From positions 186,001-250,000 of the forward strand of contig JAPDFW010000061.1 of the NCBI GenBank assembly GCA_028826165.1: a stretch of 64,000 nt of DNA. The letters run 5' to 3'. Below, one piece after another: positions 3,991 through 64,000 of this stretch (its first letter is position 1; every line of letters starts with the position of its first letter). Position numbers and translations under genes: made by a program. Origin of the DNA: Anaeramoeba ignava BMAN (taxonomy: Eukaryota > Protista > Anaeramoebae). The notes under the pieces are model-generated. The model did no database searches. It was not told where the DNA came from and saw only the letters and a program-made list of their open reading frames with translations.

Positions 3991-6949
3991 ATGAGTTTTT
4001 GTTCATTTTGCAAAAAACAACAAACAAACGGACATTATTGCTCACAAAATGGTCCATTTATTTGTTTTAAATGTCTTATTGCAACAAATACAAGCAATAA
4101 AAACTTTTCTTGTCCAATTTGCAAAAAACTAATAAACCTTACTTCTCTTATTGAAAATGTAAAAACAAAAGCAAAAAACAAAATAACAAAATAACACTTT
4201 TTTTTTGAATAATTTCTCTTTCTTTCTTTCTTTTTATTAAATCCAAATTCAAATTAAAAAATAAAATTAAAATCAAAATCAAAATTAAAATTAAAATTAA
4301 AATTAAAATTAAAATTAAAATTAAAATTCAAATTAAAATCAAAATTAAAAATTAAAATTAAAATCAAAATTTAAATTAAAATCAAAATTAAAAATCAAAA
4401 TCAAAATCAAAATTAAAATTAAAATTAAAATCAAAAATTAAAATTAAAATTAAAATTAAAATTAAAATTAAAATTAAAATTAAAATTAAAATCAAAATTA
4501 AAATTAAAATTAAAATTAAAATTAAAATTAAAATCAAAATTAAAATCAAAATTAAAATTAAAATTAATATTAAAATTAAATTTAAAATTAAAATTAAAAT
4601 TAAAATTAAAAATTAAAATCAAAATCAAAATTAAAATCAAAATTAAAATTAAAATTAATATTAAAATTAAAATCAAAAATTAAAATCAAAACCAAAATTA
4701 AAATCAAAATTAAAATCAAAATTAAAATTAAAATTAAAATTAAAATTAAAATTAAAATTAAAAATTAAAATTAAAATTAAATAAATAGCAACAAAATGAG
4801 GATTCAAGAATGTGTTCTTTTTTACAAAAAGGATGGTGTAATTCTTTTCAACATTATAAAGCAAGTGATAAAACACAGCATCCACCAGATCGGATAGTAT
4901 GTCCTAAATTTTATAAAGGGGAATCATGTTATTTATCTAATTGTCCATATGCTCATCCAAGAGCTGAAGATTTTTTGGAATGGAGAAATAAAATTTTAAG
5001 TCAAAATCTTGGTGTTAGAGATGAGAAAAAAACTAATTGTTTTTTCCTTGATCAAAGAAAACAAACCCAGAGCAAAAGTAAGAAAAATCAAAATTAAAAA
5101 TTAAAATCAAAATTAAAATTAAAATCAATATCAAAATTTAATTCAAAATAAAATTTCAATTCAAAATTTAATTCAAAATTCAAAATTCAAAATTAAAATT
5201 CAAAATCAAAAATTAAAATTAAAATTAAAATCAAAATCAAAAATCAAAATCAAAATCAAAATCAAAATCAAATTAAAATTCAAAAAAACTAAAAATTAAA
5301 ATAAAAATCAAAATTAAAATTAAAATAAAAATCAAAATATAAAAAATCAAAATCCAAAATTTTTTTATTAAAAATAGAATGCAAAAATGATACTTCTTTC
5401 ACTTATATTTCTTCCAAACGTTGTGAAGATAAAATGTGTCCATATGAACATAAAAATTTTCCTTTTGAACTAAAATCAAAAATGGATGATTATATTATTA
5501 AATATTTAAATCCCAATCAAAACGATTCAAATCAAAATGATCAATATTTTAGTCAATTTTCTAATAAAAATCAAAAACCAAAACAAAATTTATTTTCTCA
5601 AGGAGATCAAATTTCCAATCAATATATCTTTCAAGATCAAAGCACAAATCAAATGTCAAATCAAATGTCAAATCAAAATCATAAACCAAGAGTATCACTC
5701 GATAAAGATTTATTTATTCAACCAAGATCAAGAAGTTCAAAAGATTTAATTCAAAAAAATCTGGTTTATGGTGCAAAACAATATCGGAAACAATTTCAAG
5801 AAAATATTTCCACTCATTTTCAAAGCAATAATCAACAAAATTTCAATTCAAAACTCTATTCAAATCTAAATTCAAATCTCTATCCAAATATGAATTCAAA
5901 TTCAAATCAAATTCAAATTCAAAATCAAAATCAAAATCAAAACTCAAATCGATATCAAATGAAAATTGAAAATTCAACAAAAAATAGAAATCAAAATCAA
6001 AATCCAATTCAAAATCAAAATCAAAATCAAAATCCAAATCAAAATCCAAAATCAAAATTCAAATCAAGCACAAATGTATTCAAAATCCACATCTGAATCT
6101 GAATCTGACACAGATTCAAAAAAAAATCGAATTCCAATTCAAAATCAAAATCCACATTCAAATTCACAGTCAGATTCAGATTCGGATTCAGACTCAGATT
6201 CAGATTCAGATTCAGATTCAGATTCAGATCCAGATTCAGATCCAAATTCAAATTCAGATCCAAATTCAAATTCAAAATTAAATTCAAAATCAAAATCAAA
6301 TTCAAATTCAAAACCACAATCATATCCAAAGCCTCATTCAAAATCACCCTTAAATTCAAAACAAAATCCAATTCAAAATCCAATTCAAAATCCAATTCAA
6401 AATCCAATTCAAAATTCAATTCAAAATCCAATTCAAAATCAAAACCAAAATCCAATTCAAAATCAAATTCAAAATTCAACTTCTTATTCATTTAAACAAG
6501 CAACCGAAATTGAAGAATTATTCATTCGGCATTTATGGGAACAAAACACAAACATGCAATCAAAACAAATCATCTTAATTCAAATTATTGAAAATCGTGA
6601 GTTTAAATACAAATCTTTAGCAAAAATTGAGAAAATTAAAAAAACAGAAAAATTTCAAACGAATCTTTTTGGATTTTATGGAGCAAAATCAAACGAAATT
6701 AAAGAAATTTGCGAAAATGGATTTTCTTTTCAAAAAAAAAACCCAAAAAAAAATTTGCATTTTTATTTGAATTCTTCTTCTTCTATCAAAAATTGTGATA
6801 ATTCAAAAACTGTTGTTTTATGCCAATTATCTGTTTTTCAGAATGATTTACCATCTATTTCAACTTCTCATCACATTTCAACTTCTCATCACATTTCCGT
6901 TTCAAATCCTTTCAAACTTCGTCCTTTAGGTTTAATTACTTTTAATTAA
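3991..6949 (+). CDS. ZF-array gene 1: RING-like + CCHH/CCCH zinc fingers + low-complexity linker + degenerate PARP-like domain
   Basis: Exons 3991-4158, 4789-5077, 5378-6949 with GT-AG introns (phase 0, phase 1) joining in frame. One +1 shift near 6046-6051. C-terminus has FGFYGAKSNEIKEICENGF..LHFYLNSS..VVLCQL..LRPLGLITF. Confidence 0.8.
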
Positions 6950-7170
6950 AATTTTCTTTTATTTTTTTTTTTAATTTCAATTCAAACAAGAAAAAGAAAA
7001 AATAAAAGAATTAAAAAGAATTAAAAAGAATTAAAAAAAGAAATAAAAAAAAGAAAAAGAAATAAAAAAAAGAAAAAGAAATAAAAAAAGGAAAAAGGAG
7101 ACACTTTTTTTAATAATTTTTTTTTCCTTTTTTTTTTCCTTTCATTTTTTATTTTTATTTTTATTTTTAA

Positions 7171-9280
7171 ATGTTTCAACGATTTAAGCCACCTCAACCA
7201 AATCGAAATCAAAATAGAGACAGGAGACGATCAATTCAAAACAATCAAAATCAAAACAATCAAATTAGAAAACAAGATTTTGGCTTTCAAGAAGTTCAAT
7301 TTTTTGATTCTCTTTATTCAAGTTGGGAAACATATTATGGTTTTGAAAATGCTCAAATTACACTTTATATACAAAGATCTGAAATGAAAATTGAATGCAA
7401 AACAGAAACTGTAATTTAATTTAATTTAATTTAATTTTTCCCCTTTTTCTAATTTCAAAAAATAAAAGCAACAAAATCCTTTAAATTTCACAATTAAAAG
7501 CGGAACTACTCATGAATTAAATGGAATAAGATATTCAGGACAACCTTCTTATGTTGAATGGAATGATGGAAATGATAAATTTCGAATTAAATTTCATGAT
7601 TATTTTTATGCCAAATCACTTGATGATGAAATTGAACATTTAGGAAATCAAAGAAGAAGACAAACAATTGAAATGTCACAAATTGATATAACAAGGATGA
7701 TTTTAATTGATTCGATGAAAGGAAGATATTTACTTAATGGAAAGGAAAAAATTGCCCAAGCAAGAATTTTGGGAGAAAACCTTATAATAACTATTCTTCA
7801 TGTAGCTCAACAAACTAAATTTACATTTACTGGAGATCAAATGATTGAAATTGCTGATAATCATATTAGTTTCGAAGATGGAACACATTTTAATTTTTCT
7901 GAAAAAAATGAAGATTTTAAAATTTCGGTTCGAAATTCATGTTCCAAACAATCAGAAGAAAACGAAACCAAAAATATGACTATTGAATTTTTAAAAGTAG
8001 GATGTGATTATAATGATTTTGAACTTGAAGAGCAGTTTGAGATGGATTCTTTCCATATTTACTCAGAAAAAGATGTTGGATTTACAATCAATGAAACAAA
8101 TTATTTTCCACCTATTGGATGGATAAGATTGAAAATGAGAAATCAAGGAAATAAGGATGTGAGTAAATGGTCGTATGGATATCATGGAACAAAACACCAA
8201 AACACGAAATCAATTGTGCAAAATGGGTTAGTTATTCCTGGAAATAAAACACAAGATGGAACAATTGTTGAAATTGTAAAAGGACATATTCCAAATCAAA
8301 AGCATATTTATGCCTCTCAATCGTATCTTTATGCTTCTCATCCAATTTATGCTTTACCTGTGCTCTTTGAATACAACGATAAAACCTATTATGTTCGAGT
8401 AATGTTTCAAATAAGAGTTGATAAAGTGAATATAACTCAAGAACAAACAATAGGATGGCCAGATAATGTCCCTCTTGATACTCAAGTCCCGAATGATTCC
8501 CTTGAATGGATTATTTTCTCTTCAGATCAAATTGTTCCTTATGGATTGCTCATCAAATTTGATGAAGAAAATCCCGATGAAATTTTCCAAAAAATCAAGG
8601 AAAATCGGTTGGAAAAACACAATTGGAGCCATAGAACAACAGTAAAGGAAACTGAAGAGAATATTAATTTGAATAAAGAAGCGCCAAAAGAGCAAAAAAA
8701 GAAAATTCTTTGGGTTGATGACGAACCCGAAAATAATGAAGGTATAATTGAAGTGGCAAGAAAAGTAGGATTAGAAATCACAACCGTTATTGATACAAAC
8801 ACAGCAATTTTAAAGTATCAAAGAAATCCAGCAAAATGGTTTCTGATCATCAGCGACATGCGCAGATTCGAAGTTAGATCGGGACATCCCAATGAAAAAA
8901 GAGAATACATAACTGCAGGATTAACACTTACTGAATTAATCAGAAAAATCAATAAAGATGTTCCCATTTGGATTTATTCACAATACACTCGAGCTCATCC
9001 CCATTATCATTCTATTTGCTTCCACAAAGGTGTTTCAGAAGTCGTTAATGTTTCCAGAATTTTGACACATTTTTTCCCTTATGACCCCATTTATCAAAGC
9101 AATGATTATCCCTCAGTTCAAGGTTTAGAGGATTTCCAAGATTCTTCAAATGAATTTTTAGATGTTGAATATGGTCAAATTTTCAAAGTTATTATTCCTT
9201 TCGAAAATTCGTGTTTTGTTGCTGATAATGATAATAAAACAACTGGATTTGTTCTAAATAAATTAATTCAGCTCTTATAA
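7171..9280 (+). CDS. ADP-ribosyltransferase (PARP/NEURL4-like) + response-regulator receiver + SH3-like protein (~683 aa)
   Basis: Exons 7171-7410 and 7469-9280 (58-nt GT-AG intron, in frame). ART motifs YHGT..SIVQNGL..IYASQSYLYA..FQIRV..LEWI..IVPYGLLI (~8100-8560). Receiver ILWVDDEPENN..IISDMRR..AGLTL..PIWIYS (~8700-9060). SH3-like GLEDFQ..FLDVEYGQIF..GFVL (~9105-9277). Confidence 0.85.
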
Positions 9281-9424
9281 TCAAAAAAAAAACCAATTCA
9301 AAACAAATTCCACTTTTCAATTTAATTTTCCAATTTCAAAAAAGAAAAGAAACTTTTTTTAATTTTAAGAAAATAAAGTGGAATTTTTATTTTTCCTTTT
9401 TTATTTTTCATTTTTTTTTCAAAA

Positions 9425-12093
9425 ATGGTTGATGTTAAAGAAGCTTTAAAAAGTTTAGAAAAAACCAAAGAATTTGTGAAAAAATATCAAGTTGATTATG
9501 CATTACCTGTATATTAAAAAAAAACACACAAAAAAACAATTTTTTTATTTAAATTAGCAAATTATTTAAATAGGATGTAAATTAAGAATTTTTTTTCCTC
9601 TTTTTTATTAATTGGATTTATTTATTTTCTCTTTAGGATCCATCTCCTCTTTATCAAGCAATAAGCGATTCAGACCATTATGAACAGAAAAAAGAAATTA
9701 TTAAATACCTTCTCAAGAAACATGCAAACGTTAATTTTATACATGTATAAAAACTATTTTAAAAATAAGAAATCAATTAATTTTTAACAAAATATTAACA
9801 AAATAAAAAAATTTATAATTTTAGTCCGATGTAGTTATTTAGATTTTTAAATAATGTTTAAAAGTGAATTGTTAATTGTTAATTTTTAATTCTTTTTCAT
9901 TTACATTTTTTTAGTCTGTATTTTTGCTTAAATAAAATCTTTTTTTTTTAATGATTTGATTCAAAAAAATTCAAAATATCGAATATATTTCATTTATTTA
10001 ATTAAAATAGAAAGATACACCTTTGCATTTAGCAGTTGAAGATCAAAATGAGGAATTGGTTGATTTACTTTTACAATACAACCCAGATCCAACTATTAGA
10101 AATGTATAAATTATTGAATTAAATTATTGAATTAAGTTATTGAATTAAATTTTTGAATTAAATAGCAAGTAAAAATAAATATAAAGTTAAATTCAAAGAA
10201 AATTCAAACAATTAATTATTTTGATATTAATTTTTATAGGATGGTCAAATTCCACTCCATTTAGCAGATGAAAATTATTTCATTTTCAAAAAATTAATAA
10301 GATATATGCTCAAAAATCACAAAGAGGCAATATACACTAAAGATGTATTTAATCAACCAAAAATATTTGAAAAACAAATTTCAGTTTAATCGATAAATCA
10401 AAAAAAATATTTTAGAATGTAAATTTTTTACTTAATTAATTGATTAATTAATGATTAAATTTTTTTATATAAATTGAAATTATAGGATGTAAATTTTGTT
10501 TCCATTTTAAAAAAACATTTTGATTTTAAATTCCTTTATACTTTAAATCATTTTAGGATGAAACACCTTTTTATAATTTAGAAAAAAATCAGAAAAAAGA
10601 AATTGAAGAAATAATAAAACGTAAATTAATTAATTTCAATACCTAATTTTTTTCTATTAAACGGTAACTAAATTTTTATTTTATTTATTTAGAAGAGGAA
10701 AGTAAATCAAAAGATAATAAAAAAGATTCTGGAAACAAAAAATTTATTCCAAAATCAATAACAGAATCAACAGCAGAATCAACAACAGAATCAACAACAG
10801 AATCAACAACAGAATCAACAACAGAATCAACATCAAGTGATACAGATCAAAAAGAAAAAGCAAAACAAAAAGAAAAAGCAAAACAAAAAGAAAAAGCAAA
10901 ACAAAAAGAAAAATCAGATTCAAATTCAGATTCAGATTCAGATTCAGAATTAGATCAAAATCAAAATCAAAATCAAAATCAAAATCGAAACCAAATTCAA
11001 AATCAAGATTCAAATTCAAAAATTCAACAAATTATAAACCAAAATCAAAAAGAAAATCAAAATAAAATATTTGAAGGATATAAATCTCTTTTAAATTCAA
11101 ATACTTTTTATGATTTTAAAATTATAATTGATTCTAATAATACAGAAATTAAATGTCATAAAGCAATTCTTTATTCTCAACTTCAATTCTTCAAAAATTA
11201 TTTTAAAGAACAAAATTCAAATGAATTTCATTTTGAAATAGAAAATGAAAAAGATGTGAAAGAAGTTATCAATTTTATTTATACAAATCAAATTAATTTA
11301 AATTTAAATAATCTAATTGAAATTTGGTTTATTTCACAAAAATTAGAATATGAATTATTAATTAATTTAACTGAAAAAATCATTTTAAATCAAATTAATG
11401 AAAATTTAATTTTAGAAAGTTTAATCAAAAGTGAAAAACTTCAAAGAAACAAAATTAACAAAAATTTTAAAGAATTTATTCAAAAAAACTTTCAAAAAAT
11501 AATTTTAAGTGATAAAATATTTGAATTATCAATTCATAAAATTGAAGAATTAATTGAAATTGGAATTGAAAATCAACAACCAACATTTGAATTACTTTCT
11601 TTATTAACAAATTTTTCAAATAGATATGAAAATTTCCAAATACAAAAACAAAATCAAAATCAAAATCAAAATCAAATTCAAAATCAAAATCAAAATCAAA
11701 AATCAAAATAAAAAGAAAACAAAAATCAAAATTCAAAATCAAAATCAAAATCAAATTTCAAAAGAATTACCAATTTTAAATCAATTTAGTTCTTTTTTGA
11801 CAAATATTGAAAATATATTATCAATCCAACAAAAACAAGAACTCAAAAATTCACCAAATAAATTCATTAATTTTATTTCCCAAACACATCAAGAAGTTGA
11901 AAAATCAAAACAAACAACAATTTCCACAATTTTATCAAAATCAAAACGAAAATCAAAATCAAATTCAAATTCAAAATCAAAACCACAATCAAAATCAAAA
12001 CCACAATCAAAGTCAAATTCAAAGTCAAATTCAAATTCCGTTTCAAATTCAAATTCAGATTCAGATTCAGATTCAGATTCAGATTCAGATTAA
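9425..12093 (+). CDS. Ankyrin-repeat + BTB protein, 12 predicted exons including six micro-exons
   Basis: Exons 9425-9508, 9574-9576, 9637-9744, 9825-9830, 9915-9917, 10011-10103, 10166-10168, 10240-10344, 10416-10418, 10486-10488, 10557-10620, 10693-~12093. Ankyrin motifs SPLYQA, TPLHLA, IPLHLA, TPFY. BTB motif DFKII..IKCHKAILYSQ..VINFIYT. One +1 shift near 11700. Confidence 0.8.
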
Positions 12094-12451
12094 GATTAAG
12101 ATTAAGATTAAGATTAAGATCCAAAACCCAAATCAAATTCAAAATATAAATCAAAAGCAAAAGCAAAATCAAAATCAAAATCAAAATCAAAATCAAAATC
12201 AAAATCAAAATCAAAATCAAAATCAAAATCAAAATTAAAATCAAAATCAAAATCAAAATCAAAATCAAAATCAGAAACAGAAACAGATTAAACTTCAACC
12301 ACAACTTCAGATTAATTTTCATTTTAATTCTCAATTTAATAAAAAGAATAAAAAGTGGAATTTTCTTGTTTTTGTTTTTTTCCTTTTTTTTTTTAATTTT
12401 CTTTATTCATTTTTATTTTTTTTTCTTTCATTTTTTTCCGTTTTTTCAAGA

Positions 12452-15014
12452 ATGGATTGTTTTATATGCAAAAAAAAAACAAAAAAAGGTTATTCTTGTA
12501 AAAAATTTGGCACATTTTATTGTCTTAAATGTCTTCGTATGTTGAATACAGGAGCAAAAGAGGTCAAATGTCCATCTTGTGGTAGAAAAAAAAAATTAAT
12601 TCAACCAAATAAAGTTCAAGTAAACAAATTAATTAAAATCAAATTCAAAATATAAATCAAAATCAAAACCAAAATCAAAGTCAAAATCAAAATCAAAATC
12701 AAAATTAAAATCAAAATCAAAATCAAAATCAAAATCAAAATTAAAATCAAATTCAGAATCAAAATCAAATTCAAATTCAAAATCAAAATTAAAATCAAAA
12801 TCAAAATCAAATTCAATATCAAAATCAAAATCAAAATCAAAGTCAAAATCTAAATTAAAATCAAAATCAAAATTAAAATCAAAATTAAAATCAAAATCAA
12901 AATTAAAATCAAAATTAAAATCAAATTCAAATTCAAATTCAAAATCAAATTCAGAATCAAATTCAAATTCAAATTCAAAATCAAAATCAAAATCAAAATT
13001 AAAATCAAAATCAAAATCAAAATCAAAATCAAAATCAAAATCTAAATCAATATCAAAATCAGAATCAATATCAAAATCAAAGTCAAAATCACTTTCAAAG
13101 TCAAAATCACTTTCAATTCCAAAGTCAAAATCCAAATCACTTTCACTTTCAAAGTCAAAATCACTTTCAATTTCAAAGCCAAAATCAAAATAAACCGAAA
13201 ACAAATTATGATTCGCAAATGTGTTCTTTTTTACAACAAGGATGGTGTAATTCATATCAACATTTTAAAAAAAATGATCCAATAGAACATCCACCAAGTA
13301 AAATAGTATGTCCTAGTTTTTATAAAGGAGAATCATGTTATTCATATAATTGTCCATATACTCATCCAAGAGCTGAAGATTTTTTGGAATGGAGAAATAA
13401 AATTTTAAGTCAAAATCCAAATGTTGAAGATATTAAAAAAACTAATTGTTTTTTCCTTGATCAAAGACCAAAAACTCATAGCATAAGTAAGAAAAATCAA
13501 AATCAAAATTAAAATTAAAATTAAAATCTAAATCAAAATCAAAATCTAAATATAAATACAAATCTAAATCAAAATTAAAATCAAAATCAAATTCAAAATC
13601 AAATTCAAATTCAAAATTAAATCCAATATAAATCAAAATCAAAATTAAAATTAAAATTAAAATCTAAATCAAAATTAAAATTAAAATCTAAATTAAAATC
13701 TAAATCTAAATATAAATCAAAATGAAAATGAAAATCAAAATTCAAATTTAAAATCAAAATCAATATCAAATTCAAAATATAAATCAAAATCAAAATCAAA
13801 ATCAATATCAAAATCAAAATCAAAATCAAAATCAAAATCAAAATCAAAATCAATATCAAAATCAAAACCAAAATCAAAATCAAAACCAAAATCAAAATCA
13901 AAATCAAAATCAATTTCAATTTCAATTTCAATTTCAAAATCAATTTCAATTTCAAAATCAAATTAAAAATTAAAATCAATTTCAAAATCAAAATAATTCA
14001 ATATCAAATTAAAAATTGAAAATTAAAATTAAAATTAAAATCAAATTCAAAACTAAAATCATAATTAAAATCAAAATCAAAATCAAAATTAATTCCAAAA
14101 TTAAAATTAAAATTAAAATCAAATTCAAAACTAAAATCATAATTAAAATCAAAATCAAAATCAAAATTAATTCCAAAATTAAAATAAAAATTCAAATCAA
14201 AATCGGAAAAAAATTTTTAAACATTTTTTTGAATTTTAAATAGAATGTCGAAATGAACAATTAAGTTATGATCATTATGGTAATCCTTACGCTTATTCAA
14301 GTCGTTCAAATCACTGCACAAATAAAATGTGTCCTTATGAACATCCTAAATTTCCATATGATTTAAAATCAAAATTTAAATACGATAATTTCAAATATCA
14401 AAATAAAAATCAAAATCAAAATCATCATCATTATCATTCCCATCAAAGTCAAAGTTATTACCATCAAAGTCAAAAGGAAAAAGAAAATGAAAATGAAATC
14501 AAAGATAAATTTAAAACTCCATTTCAAAATTATCTTCAAAATTCAAATCAAATTCAGCTTCAAAATCCAAATCAATTTCAAAATAATTCAAAATCAAAAT
14601 CAAAATCAATTTCAAAATAATCAAAATCCAAATCAATTTCAAGATGATTCAAATCAATTTCAAAATAATGAAAATCAAAATCAATTTCAATTTCAAGATG
14701 ATTCAAATCAATTTCAAGATGAAAAAAAGAAACACAAAAAGAAAGATAAAAAAGATAAGAAAGATAAGAAAGATAAAAAAAAGAAAAAGAAAGAAAAAAA
14801 AGAAAAACAAAAATCCAAAAACAAAAAGAAACACAAACATAAAAAAGAGAATCAAATCCAAACTCAGAATCAAGATTCAAATCAAAATCAAAATCAAAAT
14901 GAAAATCAAAAAATCAAAATTAAAATTAAACATAAACATAAACATAAACATAAAAAAGAAAAGAAAAAATCAAATGAAAATGATAATGAAAATGATAATG
15001 ATAATCAAAACTAA
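12452..15014 (+). CDS. ZF-array gene 2: RING-like + CCCH block + Lys/His-rich tail
   Basis: Exon 1 12452-12619. Exon 2 ends 13486 (acceptor uncertain, possibly 13063; core starts 13219). Exon 3 starts 14244. Frame change near 14600. Confidence 0.75.
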
Positions 15015-18464: not shown

Positions 18465-21400
18465 ATGAATACTTGTACATTTTGTAAACAAGAAACGCAA
18501 ATAGTTCATCATTGCAAACTAATTAAAGCTAATCTTTGTTTTCAATGTTTTGTGCAAAAGTATCCAAGTTCAATATGTGGAGTTTGTCATGAAAATGTTA
18601 ACATTCCTGGATATATACCAAAACAAGTAAAATAAAAAAGCAAAAAACAAATTAAATTTTTTTTCCTTTTTTTTTTCTATTTCAATCAAAATTTAAATTA
18701 AATTCAAAATTCAAAATTAAAATCAAAATTAAAAATTCAAATTAAAATTAAATTCAAAATTTAAATTAAAATCTAAATCAAAATTTGAATTAAAATTCAA
18801 AATCAAAATTAAAATCTAAATCAAAATTTGAATTAAAATTAAAATTAAAATTAAAATCAAAATTAATGAACATAGCTCAAAAATTTACAGAAGAATAATT
18901 TTGTTATTATTCTGTAAATTTTGAATGGGAATCTCTTTTAAAAACTCTTTTTTTTAAGTTCACAGAATAATAATAAAAATTATTCTTCTGTGGAATCAAA
19001 AAATTCGTAAAAATTCGTCAAAATTGAAACCCAAATTTCTTAAAAATTGAGAAAAATTTTCCCTAATTCCTAAATTCATAAAATTCAAAATCATCATTTT
19101 TCCCAACTTTTGGGTTTTTCAGTTCATTAAATATAAATTAAATTTAAATTCAAATTCAAATTTTTCAAAAATATTTTTCACTCGCGTCGTTACACTCCGC
19201 TCGTGAAAAACAAATTAAAATCACTCGAAAAAGATTTTAAAAATTTTTAGAAAATAATAATTTTCTTATTATCGTGTTAAAAATTATTAAAATCAAAAAT
19301 CAAAATTCAAAATCAAAATCAAAATTAAAATCAATTTCAAAATCAAAATCAAAATCAAAATCAAAAATTAAATTTAAAATCAAAATTAAAATCAAATTCA
19401 AAATCAAATTCAAAATTTAAATCAAAATTAAAATTCAAATTTAAATTCAAATTTAAATTCAAATTCAAATTCAAAATTAAAACCAAAAATAATATTTAAA
19501 TTCAAAATTCAAATCAAAATCAAAATCAAAATCAAATTCAAAATCAAAATCAAAATTAAATTCAAATTCAAAATCAAAATCAAAATCAAAATCAAAATCA
19601 AAATCAAATTCAAAATCAAAATCAAAATCAAAATTAAAATTAAAATTAAAATTAAAATTAAAATCAAAATCAAAATCAAATTCAAATTCAAAATTAAAAT
19701 CAAATTCAAATTCAAATTCAAAATCAAAATCAAAATCAAATTCAAATCAAAAATCAAAATCAAAATCAAATTCAAAATTAAAATCAAATTCAAATTCAAA
19801 ATCAAATTCAAATTCAAATTCAAAATTTAATTAAAATACAAAACTAAAATCAAAATCAAATTAAAATTCAAACCAGAATCCAATGCAAACAGGAGGCAAT
19901 GATCATTCAGGAATGTGTTCTTTTTTACAAAAAGGATGGTGTAATTCATATCAACATTTTAAAGCAAAGGATCAAACAGAACATCCACCAGATCGGATAG
20001 TATGCCCTAAATTTTATAAAGGAGAATCATGCTATTCATATGATTGCCCATATGCTCATCCAAGAGCTGAAGATTTTTTGGAATGGAGAGGTCAACTTTT
20101 AAGTCAAAATCCTGGTATTCAAGATATTAAAAAAACTAATTGTTTTTTCCTTGATCAAAGACCAAAAACTCACAAACACAGTAAGAAAAATCAAATTCAA
20201 AATCAAAATTAAATTCAAAATCAAATCCAATTTCAAAATAATCAAAATCAAAATCAAATCAAAATTAAATTCAAAATTAAAATTAAAATTAAAATCAAAA
20301 TTAAAATCAAAATTAAAATCAAAATCAAAATCAAAATCAAAATCAAAATCAAAATCAAAATCAAAATCAAATTCAAATTGAAATTGAAATTGAAATTGAA
20401 ATTAAATTCAAAATCAAAATTAAATTCAAATTGAAATTGAAATTGAAATTGAAATTAAATTCAAAATCAAAATTAAATTCAAAATTAAAATCAATTTCAA
20501 AATCTTAATTTATCATCATTTTAATAATTTGAAATAGAATGCCGAAATGAATCATCTGGATATTATTATTCTTACGGATATTCGGGTTATTCAATTCATT
20601 CAAAACGTTGTAAAGATAAAATGTGTCCATATGAACATCATAACTTTCCATATAAATTAAAATCAAAAATGGATGATTTTATTCCAAAATATTCTAATAC
20701 AAATGATTTTAATCCAAATTCAACACACAGTGGAGTTGCTAATAAATTTCAAACACCATTTCAAAATACCATCCCAATGCCAAATTCAATGCAAAACCAA
20801 AACCCAATGCCAAATTCAATGCCAAATCAAAACCCAATGCCAAATTCAATGCCAAATCAAAACCCAATGCCAAATTCAATGCCAAATTCAATGCAAAATC
20901 AAAATCAAAATCAAAATCCAAATCAAAATCAAAATCCAAAATCAATTCCCCAAACACAAAGAAAATCACATCCAAGATCAAAAAAATCAACTACAAAATC
21001 AAAAAAATCCTATTCAAATTCAAAATCAAATTCAAAATCAAATTCAAATTCATATTCATATTCATATTCAGATTCATATTCATATTCAGATTCATATTCA
21101 GATTCAGATTCAAATTCAAATTCCAATCCAGATTCAAAATCAAAAACCAAATCAAAATCAAATTCAAAACAAATTCCTGATTCAAAATCAAATTCAAAAC
21201 AAATTCATTCAAAAAAAAAAGGAAAGGAATCAAAACAAAAAGGAAAGGAATCAAAACAAAAAGGAGAAAAATCAACAAAAGGAAAGGAATCAAAACAATC
21301 CAAGAAAAATCCACAAAACGCACAATCAAAATTAGAATCAACTGATTCTGAAATTGATACAATAAATAAAAACCCAAAATCAAAACCCAAGCCAAAAACA

Positions 21401-23035: not shown

Positions 23036-23110
23036 TAATTTAAAAAAAAAAGAAAAAAGAGGAAAAAATTTTTTTCATTTTTCATTTTTTTTCCTTTTTC
23101 TTTTCAAAGG

Positions 23111-26100
23111 ATGGATCGTTGTTCAATTTGTCGCCAAACAAAACAAATATCACACAAATGCCCAAAAACTGGTTTTCTTTTTTGTGAAAAATGTTTTGGG
23201 AATTTAGCTCCAGATTTGATATGTCCATTTTGTCACCCAAAACCTGACCAAAATAATAAAAAAAAAGAAAATCAAGTAAAATAACAAAAAACAAAATCAA
23301 TTTCTTTTTTTCTCCAATTCTCATTAAAAATCAAAATCAAAATCAAAATCAAAATCAAAATCAAAATCAAAATCTAAATCAAAACTAAATTCAAATTCAA
23401 ATTCAATATCAAATTCAAAATCAAAATCAAATTCAAAATCAAAATTAAAATCAAATCCAATATAAATCCAAAATCAAAATCAAAATCAAAATCAAAATCA
23501 AAATCAAAATCAAAATCAAAATCAAAATCAAAATCAAAATCAAAATTAAAATCTAAATCTAAATCAAAATCAAAATCAAATTCAAAATCAAATTCAAAAT
23601 TAAAATTAAAATCAAAATCAAAATTAAAATTAAAATCAAAATCAAAATCAAAATCAAAATCAAAATCAAAATCAAAATCAAAATCAAAATCAAAATCTAA
23701 ATCTAAATCAAAATCAAAACCAAAATCAAATTCAAATTCAAATTTAAAATCAAAATCAAAATCAAAATCAAAATCAAAATCAAAATCAAATCAAAATCAA
23801 AATCAAAATCAAAATCTAAATCAAATTCAAATTCAAATTCAAAATCAATTTCAAAATCAAAATAATTCAATATCAAATTAAAAATTGAAAATTAAAATTA
23901 AAATTAAAATCAAATCCAATATAAATCCAAAATCAATATCAAAATCAAAATCAAAATCAAAATCAAATTCAAATTCAAATTCAAAATTCAAAATTCAAAA
24001 TTAAATTTGAAATCAAAATCAAAATCAAAATCAATATCAAAATTAAAATCAAAATCAAATTCAAAATCAAAATCAAAATCAAATTAAAATTCAAAATCAA
24101 AATTAAAATCAAAATTAAAATCAAAATTAAAATCAAAATTGAAATCAAATTCAAATTCAAAATCAAAATCAAAATCAAATTCAAAATCAAATTCAAAATC
24201 AAATTCAAAATCAAATTCAGAAACAAAAAAGAGAATATGATGATTCCAAAATGTGCTCTTTGTTAGAAAAAGGATGGTGTAATTCTTTTGAGCATTATAA
24301 AGAAAATGATAAAACAAAACATCCACCAAGTAAAATAGTATGCCCTAAATTTTATAAAGGGGAATCATGTAATTCATCTAATTGTCCATATGTTCATCCA
24401 AGAGCTGAAGATTTTTTGGAATGGAGAAATAAAATTTTAAGTCAAGATCCAAATGTTCAAGATATTAAAAAAACTAATTGTTTTTTCCTTGATCAAAGAA
24501 AAAAGCGTGATAAAAAAGGTAAGAAAAATCAAATTAAATTTTTCCTTCAATTTTAAAAATTCAAAATTGGAAAAAAACAATTTTAATAATTTTTTTATTT
24601 TAAATAGAATGTCGAAATCACAAATCGGGTTTTCTTAAAGGTTTGAGAATTTGTGAAAATAAAATGTGTGCATTTGAACATAAAAAATTTCCACCTAAAT
24701 TAAAATCAAAAATGAATGATTATCTTAAAAAAGATTCCAATAAAACTGATTTTGATCAAAATTCAAATCAAGAATTAACTGATGATGCAATTAACCAAAA
24801 TCAAAATCAAAATCAAAATCAAAATCAAAACCAAAATCAAAATAAAAATCAAAATCCAAATTCAATGCAAAATTCAATTCAAAATTCAATTCAAAATTCA
24901 ATTCAAAGTCAATATAAATATGAATATCAAAATGAATCAAATAGAAAAAAACCGAAAAAAAATTCAACTTCAACTCCAACTTCAAATTCAACTTCAACTT
25001 CAACTTCCGACCGTACAATATCTTCACCAATAGATTCAGATTCAGATTCAGATTCAGATTCAGATTCAGATTTAGATTCGGAATTAGATCAAAATCAAAA
25101 TCAAAATCAATTTCAAAATCAAAATCAAAATTCAGATTCAAATTCCGACCGTACAATATCTTCACCAATAGATTCAGATTCAGATTCAGATTCAGATTCG
25201 GATTCGGAATTAGATCAAAATCAAAATCAAATTCAAATTCAAAATCAAAATCAAAATCAAAATCAAAATCAAAATCAAAATCAAAATCAAAATCAAAATC
25301 AAAATCAAAATCAAGATTCAAATTTAAAAATCCAGCAAATTATAAACCAAAATCAAATTCAAAATCAAAATAAAATATTTGAAGGATATAAATCTCTTTT
25401 AAATTCAAATACTTTTTATGATTTCAAAATTATAATTGATTCTAATAATACAGAAATTAAATGTCATAAAGCAATTCTTTATTCTCAACTTCAATTCTTC
25501 AAAAATTATTTTAAAGAACAAAATTCAAATGAATTTCATTTTGAAACAGAAAATGAAAAAGATGTGAAAGAAGTTATCAATTTTATTTATACAAATCAAA
25601 TTAATTTAAATTTAAATAATTTAATTGAAATTTGGTTTATTTCACAAAAATTAGAATATGAATTATTAATTAATTTAACTGAAAAAATAATTCTAAATCA
25701 AATTAATGAAAATTTAATTTTAGAAAGTTTAATCAAAAGTGAAAAACTTCAAAGAAACAAAATTAACAAAAATTTTAAAGAATTTATTCAAAAAAACTTT
25801 CAAAAAATAATTTTAAATGATAAAATATTTGAATTATCAATTCATAAAATTGAAGAAATAATTGAAATTGGAATTGAAAATCAACAACCAACATTTGAAT
25901 TACTTTCTTTATTAACAAATTTTTCAAATAGATATCAAAATTTCCAAATACAAAAACAAATTCAAAATCAAAATCAAAATCAAATTCAAATTCAAAATCA
26001 AATTTCAAAAAAACATAAAACAATTCCAAAAGAATTACCAATTTTAAATCAATTTAGTTCTTTTTTGACAAATATTGAAAATATGTTCTCAATCCAACAA

Positions 26101-27192
26101 AAACAACAACTTCAAAATTTACCAAATCAATTCATTAATTTTATTTCCCAAACACATCAAGATTATCAAAAATCAAAACAAACAACAATTTCAAATCTAT
26201 TATCAATATCAAAATCAAAATCAAAACCAAAATCAAATTCAAAACCAAAATCAAATTCAAAACCAAAACCAAAACCAAATTCAAAACCATCAAAATTGGA
26301 TCAAATAACCCAACAAAATCAAATTCAAAATCAAAATCAAAATCAAAATCAAAATCAAAATCAAAATCAAAATCAAAATCAAAGTGAAAGTCAAAGTCAA
26401 AGTCAAAGTGATAATGAGAATGAGAATGAAACAAACTCAGAAAAAAAACATAAACATAAACATAAACATAAACATGAGAACAAAGATATAAACGAACAAA
26501 TTTCAAATCAAAATGAAAATGAAATTTCAAATCAAAATCAAAATCAAATCCAACAAAAAGAAAGCAATAAAAACAAAAAGCCGAAAAAAAGCAAAAATCA
26601 AAATCAAAATCAAAATCAAAATCAAAATCAAAATCAAAATCTAAATCAAAATTAAAATCAAAATCAAAATAAAAGTCAAAGTCAAAGTCAAAGTGATAAT
26701 GAGAATGAAAATGAGAATGAAACAAACCCAAAAAAAAAACATGGGCATAAACATAAACATAAACATAAACATGAGAACAAAGATCTAAACGAACAAATTT
26801 CAAATCAAAATCAAAATGAAATTTCAAATCAAAATAAAAATCAAATCCAACAAAAAGAAAGCAATAAAAACAAAAAGCCGAAAAAAAGCAAAAATCAAAA
26901 TCAAAATCAAAATCAAAATCAAAATCAAAGTGAAAGTGAAAATCAAAGTGATAATGAAAATGAGAATGAAACAAACCCAAAAAAAAAACATGGGCATAAA
27001 CATAAACATAAACATAAACATGAGAACAAAGATATAAACGAAAAAATTCCAAATCAAAATCAATATCAAGAACAAAAAAATGATAAAAAATATAAACATA
27101 AAAAAGAAAAGAATAAATTAGATCAAAATCAAAATCAAAATCAAACGAAAACAAAAAAACATGGAAAAAAACATGGAAACAAAAAAAAATAA
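23111..27192 (+). CDS. ZF-array gene 5: RING-like + CCCH block + BTB + HK tail
   Basis: Exons 23111-23275, 24221-24518, 24608-26655. BTB at ~25400-25800. In-frame TAA at 26653-26655 inside an NQ repeat; the same frame continues with homologous tail to TAA at 27190-27192. Confidence 0.82.
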
Positions 27193-27448: not shown

Positions 27449-29018
27449 ATGAACCAATGTTCAATTTGTCACCAAACAAAACAAATATCACACAAATGCC
27501 CAAAAACTGGTTTTCTTTTTTGTGAAAAATGTTTTGGGGATTTAGCTCCAGATTTGATATGTCCATTTTGTCATCCAAAACCTGACCAAAATAATAAAAA
27601 AAAAGAAAATCAAGTAAATAACAAAAAAACAAAATCAATTTCTTTTTTTCTCCAATTCTCATTAAAAATCAAAATCAAAATCAAAATCAAAATTAAAATC
27701 AAAATCAAAATCAAAATCAAAATCAAAATCTAAATCAAAATCAAAATCAAAATCAAAATCAAAATCAAAATCAAAATCAAAATCAAAATCAAAATCAAAA
27801 TCAAAATCAAAATCAAAACCAAAATCAAAATCAAAGTCAAATTCAAATTCAAAATCAAATTCAAAATCAAAATCAAGATTCAAATTCAAAAATACAGCAA
27901 ATTATAAACCAAAATCAAATTCAAAATCAAAATAAAATATTTGAAGGATATAAATCTCTTTTAAATTCAAATACTTTTTATGATTTCAAAATTATAATTG
28001 ATTCTAATAATACAGAAATTAAATGTCATAAAGCAATTCTTTATTCTCAACTTCAATTCTTCAAAAATTATTTTAAAGAACAAAATTCAAATGAATTTCA
28101 TTTTGAAACAGAAAATGAAGAAAATGTGAAAGAAGTTATCAATTTTATTTACACAAATCAAATTAATTTAAATTTAAATAATTTGATTGAAATTTGGTTT
28201 ATTTCACAAAAATTAGAATATGAATTATTAATTAATTTAACTGAAAAAATAATTCTAAATCAAATTAATGAAAATTTAATTTTAGAAAGTTTAATCAAAA
28301 GTGAAAAACTTCAAAGAAACAAAATTAACAAAAATTTTAAAGAATTTATTCAAAAAAACTTTCAAAAAATAATTTTAAATGATAAAATATTTGAATTATC
28401 AATTCATAAAATTGAAGAATTAATTGAAATTGGAATTGAAAATCAACAACCAACATTTGAATTACTTTCTTTATTAACAAATTTTTCAAATAGATATCAA
28501 AATTTCCAAATACAAAAACAAATTGAAAATCAAAATCAAAATCAAATTCAAATTCAAAATCAAATTTCAAAAAAACATAAAACAATTCCAAAAGAATTAC
28601 CAATTTTAAATCAATTTAGTTCTTTTTTGACAAATATTGAAAATATGTTCTCAATCCGACAAAAACAACAATTCAAAAATTTACCAAATCAATTCATTAA
28701 TTTTATTTCCCAAACACATCAAGAAGTTGAAAAATCAAAACAAACAACAATTTCAAATCTATTATCAACACCACAAACAATTCAAAACACAAAAAATCAA
28801 TCAAATTCAAATTCAAATTCAAATTTAAAATCAAAATCAAAATCAAATTCAAAAAAAGAGCAAAATCAATTTCGTAAAAACAAAATTCCCAAAAGCAGAT
28901 TCAGATTCAGATCCAGATCAGATCCATTTAGAAAATCGATGATTAAACAAAAATAGAATCAAAATCTAAATCTAAATCTAAATCCGATATAGATTCACAA
29001 AAAGATCAAAACAATTAA
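27449..29018 (+). CDS. ZF-array gene 6: RING-like joined directly to BTB (no CCCH block)
   Basis: Exon 1 27449-27613, nearly identical to that of gene 5. Candidate in-frame acceptor CAG ending 27897. BTB ORF to 28956; the conserved end DIDSQKDQNN* at 29018 suggests a late frameshift. Confidence 0.7.
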
Positions 29019-53700: not shown

Positions 53701-53780
53701 AGTCAAAATCAAAATCAAAGTCAAAATCTAAATCTAAATCTAAATCCAATATAGATCCACAAAAAGATCAAAACAATTAA
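47765..53780 (+). CDS. ZF-array gene 9: RING-like + CCCH block with 46-aa loop + long K/E/N/S tail (multiple frame disruptions)
   Basis: Exons 47765-47932, 48575-48866 (two small indels), and 49126 onward. First stop at 49670, but coding-like low-complexity sequence runs to [10 protein letters not shown] at 53780. 3' structure uncertain. Confidence 0.6.
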
Positions 53781-53909
53781 AATTTAATCCAAAAAAAAAG
53801 GAATTTTCATTTAATTTTCATTTAATTTCCTTTTAATTTCCTTTTAATTTCCTTTTAATTTTCATTTTAATTTCCTTTTAATTTCCAAAAAAAAAAATGA
53901 GAAAAAAAT

Positions 53910-58400: not shown

Positions 58401-59085
58401 TCAAATTCAATATCCGAACCAATATACAATTCAAAATCAATTCCAAAATCAAGACGAATTGAGTTCAGAAACAGGATCCGAATCAGAGTCAGAGTCAGAA
58501 TCAGAGTCAGAGTCAGAATCAGAATCAGAATCAGAATCAGAATCAAAATCAAAATCAAAATCAAAATCAAATTCAAAATCAAAATCAAAATCAAATTCAA
58601 AATCAAAATCAAAATCAGATTCAAAATCAGATTCAAAATCAAACAAATCTGATTCAAAAAAATCTGAATCAAAAAAATCTGAATCAAAAAAATCTGATTC
58701 AAAAAAATCTGATTCAAAAAAATCTGATTCAAAAAAATCAGAATCAAAATCAAAATCAAAATCAAAATCAAATTCAATATCAAAATCAAATTCAAAATCA
58801 AAAAAATCTGATTCAAAAAAATCTGATTCAAAATCTGAATCAAAAAAATTTGATTCAAAAAAATCTGAATCAAAAAAATCTGATTCAAAAAAATCTGAAT
58901 CAAAAAAATCAAAAACAAAATCTGATTCAAAAAAATCTGATTCAAAAAAATTTGATTCAAAATCTGATTCAAAAAAATTTGATTCAAAATCTGATTCAAA
59001 AAAATCAAAAACAAAATCAAAAACAAAATCAAACAAATCTGATTCAAAAAAATCCAAAAAATCCAATTCAAAAAAATCAAATTGA
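55497..59085 (+). CDS. ZF-array gene 10: C4C4 RING-like + CCCH block + SDSKK-repeat tail
   Basis: Exons 55497-55664 (CTIC..CKKC..CFQC..CPFCR), ~57174-57453, and 57526 onward. Frame changes in the tail; stop at 59085. Confidence 0.75.
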
Positions 59086-59233
59086 AACAAATTCAATTCA
59101 TAAAAATCAAATTTTTAAAAAGGATTTTTATTCATTTTCTTCTTCTCAAAAAAAATAAATAAAAATAAATAAAAAATTGTCCGATTTTTGTTTTCATTTT
59201 TTTTTCCATTTTTAATTTTATATTGTTGAAATA

Positions 59234-62200
59234 ATGAATTATGTTTGCTATTTAAAATTAAAATTTAAAACCAAATTTCAAATTATTTAATTGATATTAT
59301 TTATTTGGATTAAAAATAAAAAAAGTACAATAATTCAGGAATGTGTGTTTATTTACAAAATGGATGGTGTAATTCTTATAAGCATTATAAAGCAAATAAT
59401 AAAACAGAACATCCACCCGATATGATAGTATGCCCAAAATTTTATAAAGGAGAATCATGTCATAACCTTAATTGTCCATATACTCATCCAAGAGCTAAAG
59501 ATTTTTTGAAATGGAGAGGTCAAATTTTATGTCAAAATATCAATGTTAGAGAAATTAAAAAAACTCATTGTTTTTTTCTTGATCAAAGACAAAAAATTTG
59601 TAAAAAACGTAAGAAAAATAACACCAAAATAATATCAACTCAATCAATACTCAAAATATTCAAAATATCCAAAATATTTAAAATAAATATTCAAAATATT
59701 TAAAATAAATATTCAAAATATTTAAAATAAATATTCAAAATATTTAAAATAAATATTCAAAATATTTAAAATAAATATTCAAATTATTTAAAATAAATAT
59801 TTAAAATAAATATTCAAAATAAATATTTAAAAATATTTAAAATAAATATTTAAAATAAATATTCAAAATAAATATTTAAAATAAATATTCAAAATATCCG
59901 AAATATCCAAAATAAATATTCAAAATAAATATTTAAAATAAATATCCAAAATAAATATTCAAAAATAAATATTTAAAAATAAATACCTAAAAATAATCAA
60001 AATAAATATTTAAAATAAATATTCAAAATATCCAAAATAAATATCCAAAATAAATATTCAAAATAAATATTCAAATTAAATATCCAAAATAAATATCCAA
60101 AATAAATATTCAAAATATTCAAAATAAATATTCAAAAATATTCAAAATAAATATTCAAAAATATTTAAAATAAACCAAAATAAATATTCAAAATATCCAA
60201 AATAAATATTCAAAATAAATATTCAAATTATTTAAAATAAATATTTAAAATAAATATTTAAAATAAATATTCAAAATAAATATTCAAAATAAATATTTAA
60301 AATAAATATTTAAAATAAATATTTAAAATAAATATTTAAAATAAATATTTAAAATAAATATTTAAAATAAATATTTAAAATAAATATTTAAAATAAATAT
60401 TTAAAATAAATATTTAAAATAAATATCCAAAATAAATATCCAAAATATTTAAAATAAATATTCAAAATATTTAAAATAAATATTCAAAATATTTAAAATA
60501 AATATCCAAAATAAATATTTAAAATATCCAAAATAAATATTTAAAATAAATATTTAAAATAAATAATCAAAATAAATATTTAAAATATCCAAAATATTCA
60601 AAATAAATATTTAAAATAAATATTCAAAATAAATATTTAAAATAAATATTCAAATTAAATATTTAAAATAAATATTTAAAATATCCAAAATAAATATTTA
60701 AAATACCTAAAATATTCATAAAAAATTTTTTTAAATTTATAAATTGTCAAAGCATGCAAAAAAGAAAAAACAATCCGTGAACGTTTTCGACATTGTAAAG
60801 TTGAGATGTGTCCATATGAACATCCTAGGTTTCCATCAGCATTAAAATCAAAGATGGATAATTATGTTTGGAAATATCTTCCTCAAAATCAAAATCAAAT
60901 TCAAATTCAAATTCCAATTCCAATTCCAAATCCAAATCAAAATCCAAATCTAAATCCAAATCTAAATCCAAATCCAAATCTAGATCCAAATCTAATTCTA
61001 ATTCAAAATCAAAATCAAATTCAATTTCAAAATCAAAATCCAAATCAAAATCAAAATCAAAATCCATATCCAATTCAAAATCCATATCCAATTCAAAATC
61101 CATATCCAATTCCAATTCAAAATCAAAATCCATATCCAATTCCAATTCAAAATCAAAATCAATTTCAAAATCAAGATTCCCATTCAGATTCAAAACATCA
61201 TCGTTCATATTCAAAACATCATCATTCAGATTCAAAACATCATCATTCAGATTCAAGATCAAATTCAAAACATCGTTCAGATTCAAAACATCATCATTCA
61301 GATTCAAGATCAAATTCAAAAAATCATCGTTCAGATTCAAAACATCATCATTCAGATTCAAGATCAAATTCAAAACATCGTTCAGATTCAAAACATCATC
61401 ATTCAGATTCAAAAAATCATCATTCAGATTCAAGATCAAATTCAAAACATCGTTCAGATTCAAAACATCATCATTCAGATTCAAGATCAAATTCAAAACC
61501 GAAACTGAAACCGAAACCAAGATCAAATTCAAATTCAAAACATCATTCAGATTCAAATTCAAAATCAAATCCAAATTCAAGATCAAATTCAAAACCAAGA
61601 TCAAAATCAAATTCCAGATCAAATCCAAATCCAAATTCAAAAAAAGAACAAACAAAGGAAGAAATTCTAAGTTCTCAATCACCATTAATATATACTCTTT
61701 CAAAATCAAAATCAAAATTTAAATCAAAATCAAAATTTAAATCAAAATCAAAATCAAAATCAAAATCAAAATCAAAATCAAAATCAAATTCAAAATTTAA
61801 ATTAAAATTAAAATTAAAATCAAAATCAAAATCAAAATCAAAATCAAAATCAAAATCAAAATCAGAATCAGAATCAGAATCAGAATCAGAATCAAAATCA
61901 AATTCAAAATCAAATTCAAAATCAAAATTTAAATTAAAATTAAAATTAAAATCAAAATCAAAATCAAAATCAAAATCAAATTCAAAATCAAAATCAAAAT
62001 CAAAATCAAAATCAAAATCAAAATCAAAATCAAAATCAAAATCAAAATCAAAATCAAAATCAAAATCAAAATCAAAATCAGAATCAGAATCAGAATCAAA
62101 ATCAAAATCAAAATCAAAATCAAAATCAAAATCAAATTCAAAATCAAAATCAAAACCAAATTCAAATTCAAAATCAAAATCAAAATCAAAATCAAAATTT

Positions 62201-62341
62201 AAATCAAAATCAAAATCAAAATCAAAATCAAAATCAAATTCAGACTCTCAAAAAATAAACTTTACAAGGAAAAATGTTAAGACAATACCAACAGTACAAC
62301 CATCTCATGAAATAATCATTCCATCAGGAAATTCAGATTGA
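59234..62341 (+). CDS. ZF-array gene 11: RING-less CCCH protein with SDSKHHH and SK repeats
   Basis: Predicted exons 59234-59242 (MNY), 59326-59608, 60753-62341, all in frame. Could alternatively start at ATG 59341. Confidence 0.75.
59650..60715. repeat. ~13-bp minisatellite (AAAATAAATATTT/AAAATAAATATTC with 9-bp variants) in intron 2 of gene 11
   Basis: Direct reading; purest at 60290-60420. Confidence 0.9.
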
Positions 62342-62622
62342 AATTCAGATTGAAATTAAAATTAAAATTAAAATTAAAATTAAAATTAAAATTTAAATTA
62401 AAATTAAAATTGAAATTAAAATTAAAATTAGAATTAAAATTAATTTATAAAATTAAAATTTGGAAAAAAATTCCTTTTTTGATTGAAAAAAGTAAAAAAG
62501 AAAATCAAGAATTTCCACTTTATTTTTCTCCTTTTTTTTTTTTCCTTTTTTATTTTTTTTTTTCCTTTTTTTATTTTTCATTTTTTTCCTTTTTTTTTAT
62601 TTGAAATTATTATTTAAAAATA

Positions 62623-64000
62623 ATGAATGTTTGTGATATAAAATTTAAATTAAAACGACAAAACAAACAAAAAAAAACTAAGATAAATTAAAATTTTTTT
62701 TATAAAAAAACAAAATAAATAAAAAATAAAACAAAAACAGTCAAACAATGATCCAATGATGTGTTCTTATTTAGGACAAGGATGGTGTAATTCTTATGAT
62801 CATTATAAAACAAATGATACCAATTTACATCCACCGAATAGAATAGTATGCCCTAATTTTTATCAAGGTAAACAATGCAATACATCTGATTGTCCTTATG
62901 TTCATCCAAGGTTTGAGGATTTTTTGGAATGGAGAAATGAAATTTTAAGTCAAAATCAGGAAGTTAAAGATATTAAAAAAATTAATTGTTTTTTTCTTGA
63001 TCAAAGAGAAAAAGCATCTACAAAAAGTAAAATCAAAAAATCAAATTCAATTCCAATATTAAAATCAATATCTAAATCAAAATCAATATTAAAATTAAAA
63101 TCAAATTCAATTTCAATATTAAAATCAAAATTAAAATAAAAATCAATTTCAATATTAAAATCAAAACCAAAATCAAAATAAAAATCAATATCAAAATCAA
63201 TATTAAAATTAAAATCAAAATAAAAATCTAAATTCAAATTCAAATCAAAATAAAAATCAAAATAAAATCAATATCTAAATTCAATATCAAATTCAAATTC
63301 AAATTAAAATTCAAATTAAAATTCAAAATCAAAATAAAAATCAATATCAAAATCAAAATCAAAATCAAAATCAAAATCAAAATCAAAATTTAAATCAATA
63401 TCAAAATCAAAATCAAAATTAATATAAAAATCAATATCTAAATCAAAATCTAAATTCAAAATCAAAATCAAAATCAAAAATCAAAACCAAAATCTAAATT
63501 CAAATTAAAATCAATATCAAAATTAAAATAAAAATCAAATTCAAATTCAAATTCAAATTCAAATTCAAATTCAAATTCAAAATAAAAATTAAAATCAAAA
63601 CCAAAATCAAAATCAATATTAAAATCAAAATCGAAATTAAAATTAAAATCAAAACCAAAATCAAAATCAAAATCAAAACCAAAATCAAAATCAAAATCAA
63701 AACCAAAATCAAAATCAAAATAAAAATCAAAATCAAAATTAAAATTCAAAAATATTATTTATAAATTCAAAATAGAATGTCCAAATGAAAAATCAAAATT
63801 TTTTGGTTTTTTTGAAAAACATTGTGACACGAAAATGTGCAAATATGAGCATAATAATTTTCCATCTAAATTAAAATCAAAACTTGGAGATGCAATTTTG
63901 AATTATAAAACATCGAAAAAATCCAAACCACCAAATCCAAATCAGAATCAAAATCAAAATTCAAATCAAACTCAATTTCAGTTTCCAAATCCAAATCAAA
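62623..64000 (+). CDS. ZF-array gene 12: RING-less CCCH protein, 3' end outside window
   Basis: Predicted exons 62623-62628 (MN), 62741-63026, 63776-64000+ (CPNEKSKFFGFFEKHCDTKMCKYEH). Confidence 0.75.

Follow-up and report, generated by a model that had tools for sequence, protein, structure and literature searches.

The 64,000-nucleotide (nt) window analysed here, from the genome of the anaerobic amoeba Anaeramoeba ignava BMAN (contig JAPDFW010000061.1, positions 186,001 to 250,000, forward strand; coordinates are those of the window unless another locus is named) holds an array of 12 genes that, as judged from sequence, carry a CCHH-CCCH-CCCH tri-zinc-finger module. A six-frame scan of the window located 24 C-x4-C-x3-H motifs, on the plus strand only and forming 12 pairs, with one member of each pair in exon 2 and its partner at the start of exon 3. 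The hypervariable loop between two cysteines that a first-pass annotation of this DNA had described at the start of exon 3 corresponds to the Cys1-Cys2 spacer of finger 3. Across the 42.8 Mb genome, 13 family copies stand in one tandem row (contig C62), 12 of them within the window and the thirteenth (gene 13, database protein P0001) just outside it; there is one unlinked copy (contig C106), and there are at least 26 more distant matches. Counts over 14 copies refer to the 12 window genes, gene 13 and the C106 copy. Exons were searched one by one rather than as spliced models.

Gene layout and the finger-3 spacers

Exon 2 proved constant in more genes than first listed, with the donor GT 268 nt past the M/I-C codon in ten of them (genes 1-5, 7, 8, 10, 11 and 12). 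The exceptions are genes 6 (267 nt) and 9 (271 nt), both of which are frameshifted in the assembly: exon 2 of gene 6 is 1 nt short, exon 3 therefore being out of frame in the public model P0002, and exon 2 of gene 9 has +1 and +2 insertions with three stops in between. The first Cys codon of finger 3 starts exactly 2 nt after the acceptor in 12/12 genes, which fits a phase-1 donor. The acceptor is TAG in 11 of the 12, in each case the first YAG past the donor, the introns of 72-757 nt being free of YAG; in gene 11 it is AAG, with no YAG from the donor through to Cys2. Genes 3, 7, 9 and 10 have a YAG inside the loop, use of which as acceptor would remove Cys1. Non-canonical AAG acceptors occur at the homologous intron in gene 11 (60750-60752), gene 13 (L001:3658-3660) and one distant paralogue (L009:5163-5165, minus strand), and that of gene 13 appears in the public model P0001. 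A Cys near the end of exon 2 was considered as the first ligand and rejected, Ser or another residue standing there in most distant paralogues; an alternative genetic code was likewise rejected as not needed. Word-index homologue searches returned only P0001 and P0002, or nothing, and zero transcript-derived sequences of the window genes, these blanks being length-limited.

The Cys/His zinc ligands of the array are invariant, and the finger-3 ligand order C-xn-C-x4/5-C-x3-H (three Cys, one His) is kept in all 14 copies. The other inter-ligand spacings and the linker are constant across the array once the frameshifting indels in genes 6 and 9 are set aside, and every indel that keeps the module in frame lies in the spacer. 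All 12 loops were recovered with the places, sequences and lengths first assigned to them (Table 1); over the 14 copies the lengths are 9 (gene 13), 12, 13 (three times), 14 (five times, including the C106 copy), 15, 22 (twice) and 46. The claim that loop indels preserve the reading frame extends to 14/14 copies, two of them outside the window; the seven distinct lengths imply at least six indel events, an outcome with a probability of ~0.001 by chance. Purifying selection on coding DNA ordinarily has this effect.

The loops had also been described as rich in aromatics, Gly and Ser rather than in N/Q repeat, and this description stands in part. The F/Y/W share is 17% in the loops compared with 7% in the N/Q-rich downstream region (p=3e-6) and 11% in globular controls, but with 15% in 68 other CCCH Cys1-Cys2 spacers of the genome (p=0.51; p=0.77 for Tyr), against which only Gly plus Ser is modestly raised (22% vs 14%, p=0.01); these p-values are rough, as loop residues are not independent. 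N plus Q make up 10% of the loops vs 37% of the rest of the exons, where AAAATC/N-Q repeats dominate. The short loops are basic and Phe/Lys/Ser-rich, and only the three long loops (genes 2, 4 and 9) are Tyr-rich (18% Tyr); net charge ranges from +4 to -4, the 46-residue loop of gene 9 being acidic. Short internal duplications are present in the loops of genes 4, 6, 9 and 12, which suggests slippage as one source of loop length.

Table 1. Exons, finger-3 spacers and PARP-like domain of the array (window coordinates; aa, amino acids)
Feature	Position	Strand	Remarks
Gene 1 exon 1, RING-like, Cys-rich	3991..4158	+	Pfam RING-family matches below cut-off, E 0.002-0.2; end placed by inference at the likely donor
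RING-like exons, other genes	12452, 15320, 18465, 23111, 35361/35589/35834/36063, 41184, 47765, 55497		similarity to gene 1 exon 1
Gene 1 exon 2 core, M-C codon to donor	4810..5077	+	finger 1 C-x7-C-x4-H-x8-H, finger 2 C-x8-C-x4-C-x3-H, helical linker
Exon 2 core starts, other genes	13219, 16384, 19913, 24251, 37131, 42652, 43618, 48596, 57186, 59341, 62759		length equal in all intact copies
Gene 1 spacer, 13 aa	5383..5421	+	finger 3 spans 5380-5451
Gene 2 spacer, 22 aa, Tyr-rich	14249..14314	+	single DNA match in genome
Gene 3 spacer, 14 aa	16863..16904	+	
Gene 4 spacer, 22 aa, Tyr/Gly/Ser-rich	20543..20608	+	short internal duplications; single DNA match in genome
Gene 5 spacer, 13 aa	24613..24651	+	exon 3 runs on in frame to BTB domain
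Gene 6 spacer, 15 aa	37495..37539	+	
Gene 7 spacer, 14 aa	43019..43060	+	
Gene 8 spacer, 13 aa	43985..44023	+	same sequence as gene 5 spacer
Gene 9 spacer, 46 aa	49131..49268	+	
Gene 10 spacer, 14 aa	57531..57572	+	
Gene 11 spacer, 12 aa, basic	60758..60793	+	AAG acceptor
Gene 12 spacer, 14 aa	63781..63822	+	nearest relative is the unlinked C106 copy with BTB-like domain
Gene 1 downstream PARP-like domain	6482..6946	+	degenerate, with Tyr in place of the conserved His; E 3e-18 to family PARP profile

Relatives of the module and its domain context

Distant paralogues (L008, L009 twice, L010, L013 and L020) share the position and phase of the intron and open exon 3 with an x8 spacer (C-x8-C-x4-C-x3-H); after the same intron, L007 and the nearest outgroup, L004, have a C-x5 finger-3 spacer. 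Finger 3 of the distant paralogues matches zf-C3H1 weakly, and in one of them the transcriptome-derived protein P0003 has the predicted junction spliced as expected. A profile search of 1.84 billion proteins located the three-finger module also in Gocevia, Gefionella and environmental assemblies; an A. flamelloides label was absent among the 30 homologue matches looked up. The finger-3 spacer has five or eight residues in 16/16 database homologues measured. Because the distant paralogues and these homologues have x5 or x8 there, the loop is the Cys1-Cys2 spacer of a CCCH finger that is expanded in the array only, the ancestral finger-3 spacer having been of eight (or five) residues. The annotation's picture of local hypervariability in an exposed segment carried by a zinc finger is supported, with the amendment that the scaffold is a CCCH (C3H1) finger; the zinc knuckle, as first proposed, was rejected.

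Other loci of the family vary in their own ways. Further fingers have spacers of 12-14 residues, and in homologues from other eukaryotes (P0022, P0014 and P0069) it is the finger-2, not the finger-3, spacer that is long (15-17 residues; ~25-28 in P0022). A second tandem array (L015-L018; contig C78, 50001-90000) comprises at least nine genes with three fingers and a PARP-like domain, in which eight-residue spacers are fixed, with a FYVE domain in one open reading frame (ORF). Further arrays (L011, L012, L005 and L014) encode multi-finger proteins alternating x8 and x12-14 CCCH fingers, some with a PARP end. We found no paper on Anaeramoeba zinc-finger families.

The nearest solved sequences are the CCCH fingers of MBNL1/2 and Nab2 (PDB sequence search, E 1e-4 to 1e-2); finger 2 matches MBNL/Nab2 chains, and zf-CCCH weakly, with Pfam scores below cut-off. 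The array shares with MBNL1/2, Nab2, TIS11d and ZC3H12 the ligand pattern C-xn-C-x4-C-x3-H and aromatic and Gly residues in the spacer, which are to be expected there: in Nab2 and ZC3H12, RNA bases stack on aromatics of the Cys1-Cys2 spacer (PMC8136824). Canonical Cys1-Cys2 spacings are 6-14, with 15 in rice (PMC2267713), such that 11/14 copies (9-15) fall inside this range or at its margin and genes 2, 4 (22) and 9 (46) lie well outside it. Unlike the CCCH norm, the array spacers differ between close paralogues and finger 1 is CCHH-like.

In overall architecture the family resembles ZAP (PARP13) and PARP12, in which tandem CCCH fingers are joined to a PARP or PARP-like domain, as they are in gene 1 (degenerate), in paralogues and in homologues from other eukaryotes. 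Membership of that group nevertheless fails on three counts: the array has three fingers vs four, the fold match to ZAP is not significant, and the WWE domain had zero matches in Pfam scans of window ORFs, paralogues and homologues. The CCCH domain of ZAP is conserved, without positive selection (PMC2213710), the reverse of the variable-finger pattern of the array. Among the array copies only gene 1 (1/14) has the PARP-like domain, which the assembly places in a frame other than that of exon 3, either through a shift near 6050 or an intron; a pairwise BLAST of the gene 1 tail against one PARP was not significant. A Pfam PARP domain is joined to the module in paralogues on contigs C78, C14 and C93 and in an environmental homologue.

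RING and CCCH domains are combined in the RNA-binding E3 ligases Makorin, Roquin, Unkempt and RNF113. Most array copies have a RING-like first exon (spacing C2-H-C-C2-C2), none having been found for genes 8, 11 and 12; the likeness to these ligases lies in the domain combination, whereas domain order and finger spacing differ. Four such exons stand in tandem before gene 6 (35361-36257), and P0002 splices all four in succession. A BTB domain follows finger 3 of gene 5 (E 8e-12), and the C106 copy has a BTB-like stretch (by inspection). BTB cassettes, near-identical, occur three times (10668-11708, 24604-26652 and 27697-28953), one past gene 5 finger 3 and one after a fingerless RING exon (27449). 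Between 43016 and 43620, gene 7 exon 3 reaches gene 8 exon 2 via repeats and in another frame, without a RING exon between, and the two may form a single gene with a pair of modules. The window also contains an ORF (7466-9277) that combines an HGT motif like that of ADP-ribosyltransferases with a weak match to a response-regulator receiver domain (E 0.011), and a gene with RING and protein kinase domains mid-array (32098-33795).

Divergence of the spacer within the array

The clearest contrast between loop and flanks is seen in gene 6, the loop of which differs from those of genes 5, 7 and 8 at 18-21 of 39-42 nt (46-50%), whereas 2-3 of ~90 intron 2 positions (2-3%) and 9-10/105 positions past Cys2 differ (p<1e-8). 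Gene 6 is itself a mosaic, with the first 84 nt of its exon 2 identical to gene 2, its intron 2 near genes 5, 7 and 8, and its sequence past Cys2 closest to gene 3; among genes 5, 7 and 8, the nearest partner switches block by block at informative sites. The array copies are mosaics of the pattern produced by gene conversion or unequal crossover, the finger-3 patch having been left divergent, and the spacer thus behaves as a divergence island amid gene conversion.

Per-site entropy and the ratio of nonsynonymous to synonymous substitution rates (dN/dS), both suggested with the first description of the loop, were compared between loop and flanks. Column entropy, at 0.6 bits in exon 2 and 1.0 past Cys2, peaks at 2.6-3.0 mid-loop. 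Codon models give a loop dN/dS of ~0.45 (profile interval about 0.2-1.0), compared with 0.12 past Cys2 and 0.15 in exon 2; the loop estimate rests on nine alignable short loops and is limited by ambiguous alignment and recombination. Simple NG86 counts, in which the proportion of nonsynonymous differences (pN) in exon 2 came near that of synonymous ones (pS), were rejected as an A+T-bias artefact. Between gene 12 and the C106 copy the loop pN (0.11) is below the flank pS (0.32-0.48), implying that the loop is variable yet constrained. Genes 5 and 8 have an identical loop, and tree lengths indicate higher synonymous divergence around finger 3 than in exon 2. Positive selection on the loop is not demonstrated by these comparisons, nor do they appear to favour neutrality.

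The likeness to the third complementarity-determining region of antibody heavy chains (CDR-H3), to which the loops had been compared, is loose and goes no further than a conserved scaffold with a loop that varies in length and is in part rich in Tyr/Gly/Ser: aromatics are typical for such spacers, the mean dN/dS is below 1, and there is no sign of rearrangement or cassettes. The array has neither an immunoglobulin fold nor rearrangement signals, and consists of germline paralogues on a cytoplasmic zinc-finger scaffold; the antibody-like impression applies to genes 2, 4 and 9 only. In its dynamics the array is nearer to tandem resistance (R)-gene or major histocompatibility complex (MHC) arrays with conversion-resistant variable patches.

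Possible roles of the spacer

The reading that we favour, tentatively and at somewhat less than an even chance, is that the spacer tunes specificity on an RNA-binding-type finger, with selection keeping spacers different between copies. The module would bind RNA as the CCCH fingers of the MBNL/Nab2/ZAP type do, the spacer would face the ligand, and selection would retain differing spacers per copy such that the array covers different RNA targets. The RING, BTB or degenerate PARP-like domains would provide ubiquitin- or ADP-ribose-pathway outputs, possibly in defence, and diversification would proceed by germline paralogue evolution rather than somatically. The following speak for this reading: the MBNL1/2 and Nab2 fingers as nearest solved sequences, the stacking of RNA on spacer aromatics in Nab2 and ZC3H12, the short finger-3 spacers behind the same intron in distant paralogues and in homologues, the contrast between loop and intron in gene 6, the mosaic blocks, a loop dN/dS above that of the flanks alongside a constrained gene 12/C106 loop, and the union of the module with PARP in paralogues and homologues. 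The loop as specificity determinant, as the annotation had proposed, is plausible. A more far-reaching version, which we regard as doubtful, would make the array a set of protist sensors for RNA (or protein). One extended CCCH loop of up to 46 residues would set the target, conflict with viruses, mobile elements or symbionts would maintain the diversity, and RING/BTB/PARP domains would supply the outputs, in a ZAP-like system that diversifies its recognition finger, not its PARP domain.

Several observations weigh against the proposal that the spacer tunes specificity. The loop dN/dS does not exceed 1, the sequence past finger 3 is in most members of the array no more than a low-complexity tail, and the assembled genes 6 and 9 are broken, such that the 46-residue loop of gene 9 needs read support before it can carry weight. 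The finger-2 spacer varies from 5 to 17 or more residues in distant homologues, which implies that such spacers tolerate insertion generally. Structural comparisons were made with the folded module in the database AlphaFold model of gene 13 (P0001, 9-residue spacer, just beyond the window), which has a predicted local distance difference test (pLDDT) score of 81 and a helix after finger 3. Foldseek ranked ZAP first, at non-significant values (E 2-6, template-modelling (TM) score 0.16-0.21); VIA-align of the module model gave no match, and an Atlas structure search gave TM scores below 0.4. A model of an isolated finger with a 22-residue loop was of low confidence (pLDDT 56, loop below 50), which leaves zinc binding by fingers with 22-46 residue spacers putative.

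The principal alternative, possible but on balance unlikely, is an insertion-tolerant surface loop under relaxed constraint, in which the ligands are kept, length drifts by slippage and divergence escapes conversion for lack of pairing, without any copy-specific function. The dN/dS below 1, the raised synonymous divergence around finger 3, the internal duplications, the 12-17 residue spacers in other fingers of the family and the low pLDDT of the long loop are all compatible with such drift. It accounts less well for loops that have not filled with AAAATC/N-Q repeats, for purifying selection on the gene 12/C106 loop, and for the retention by gene 6 of a 45-nt divergent patch amid near-identical flanks.

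We consider it improbable that the loop instead binds protein and selects substrates for RING/BTB ubiquitin modules, the array being a set of E3 substrate receptors for host, symbiont or viral targets and the finger a structural scaffold. RING-like exons before most copies, BTB domains after gene 5 and in the C106 copy, the range of loop charge and the acidic 46-residue loop, which is a poor fit to RNA, are consistent with this proposal; however, the nearest solved relatives are RNA-binding fingers, most loops are basic, and the RING matches are below the Pfam cut-off. That the array is decaying, with many copies pseudogenes and loop variation a relic, is very improbable. The exon 2 frameshifts, the frame change before the gene 1 PARP-like domain, the missing RING exons and the mostly low-complexity tails would fit decay, but dN/dS is 0.12-0.15 in exon 2 and the post-loop region and all Cys/His ligands are invariant; moreover, because the published A. 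ignava assembly is nanopore-based, albeit polished (PMC11550330), short indels in A/T runs may be sequencing errors. Programmed or somatic antibody-like diversification by rearrangement, templated cassette conversion or hypermutation is barely credible: although length variation at one site, Tyr/Gly/Ser-rich long loops and patchy mosaicism recall it, every finger-3 exon located genome-wide has an exon 2 of its own, leaving no orphan donor segments, neither the gene 2 nor the gene 4 loop has a second match in the genome (a search that is not proof of rarity), no heptamer/nonamer occurs near the loops, and loops are identical in genes 5 and 8 and conserved between gene 12 and the C106 copy.

A merely tolerant loop would reduce the array to an ordinary expansion within one lineage. 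As RNA readers, CCCH fingers are in general compact and conserved, and the finger domain of ZAP shows no positive selection. Thirteen distinct spacers of 9-46 residues on a near-fixed module would make a natural test of how the spacer governs RNA specificity, as well as of how long a spacer can grow while still binding zinc, and would mark the array as a candidate innate recognition system of a metamonad that is free-living.

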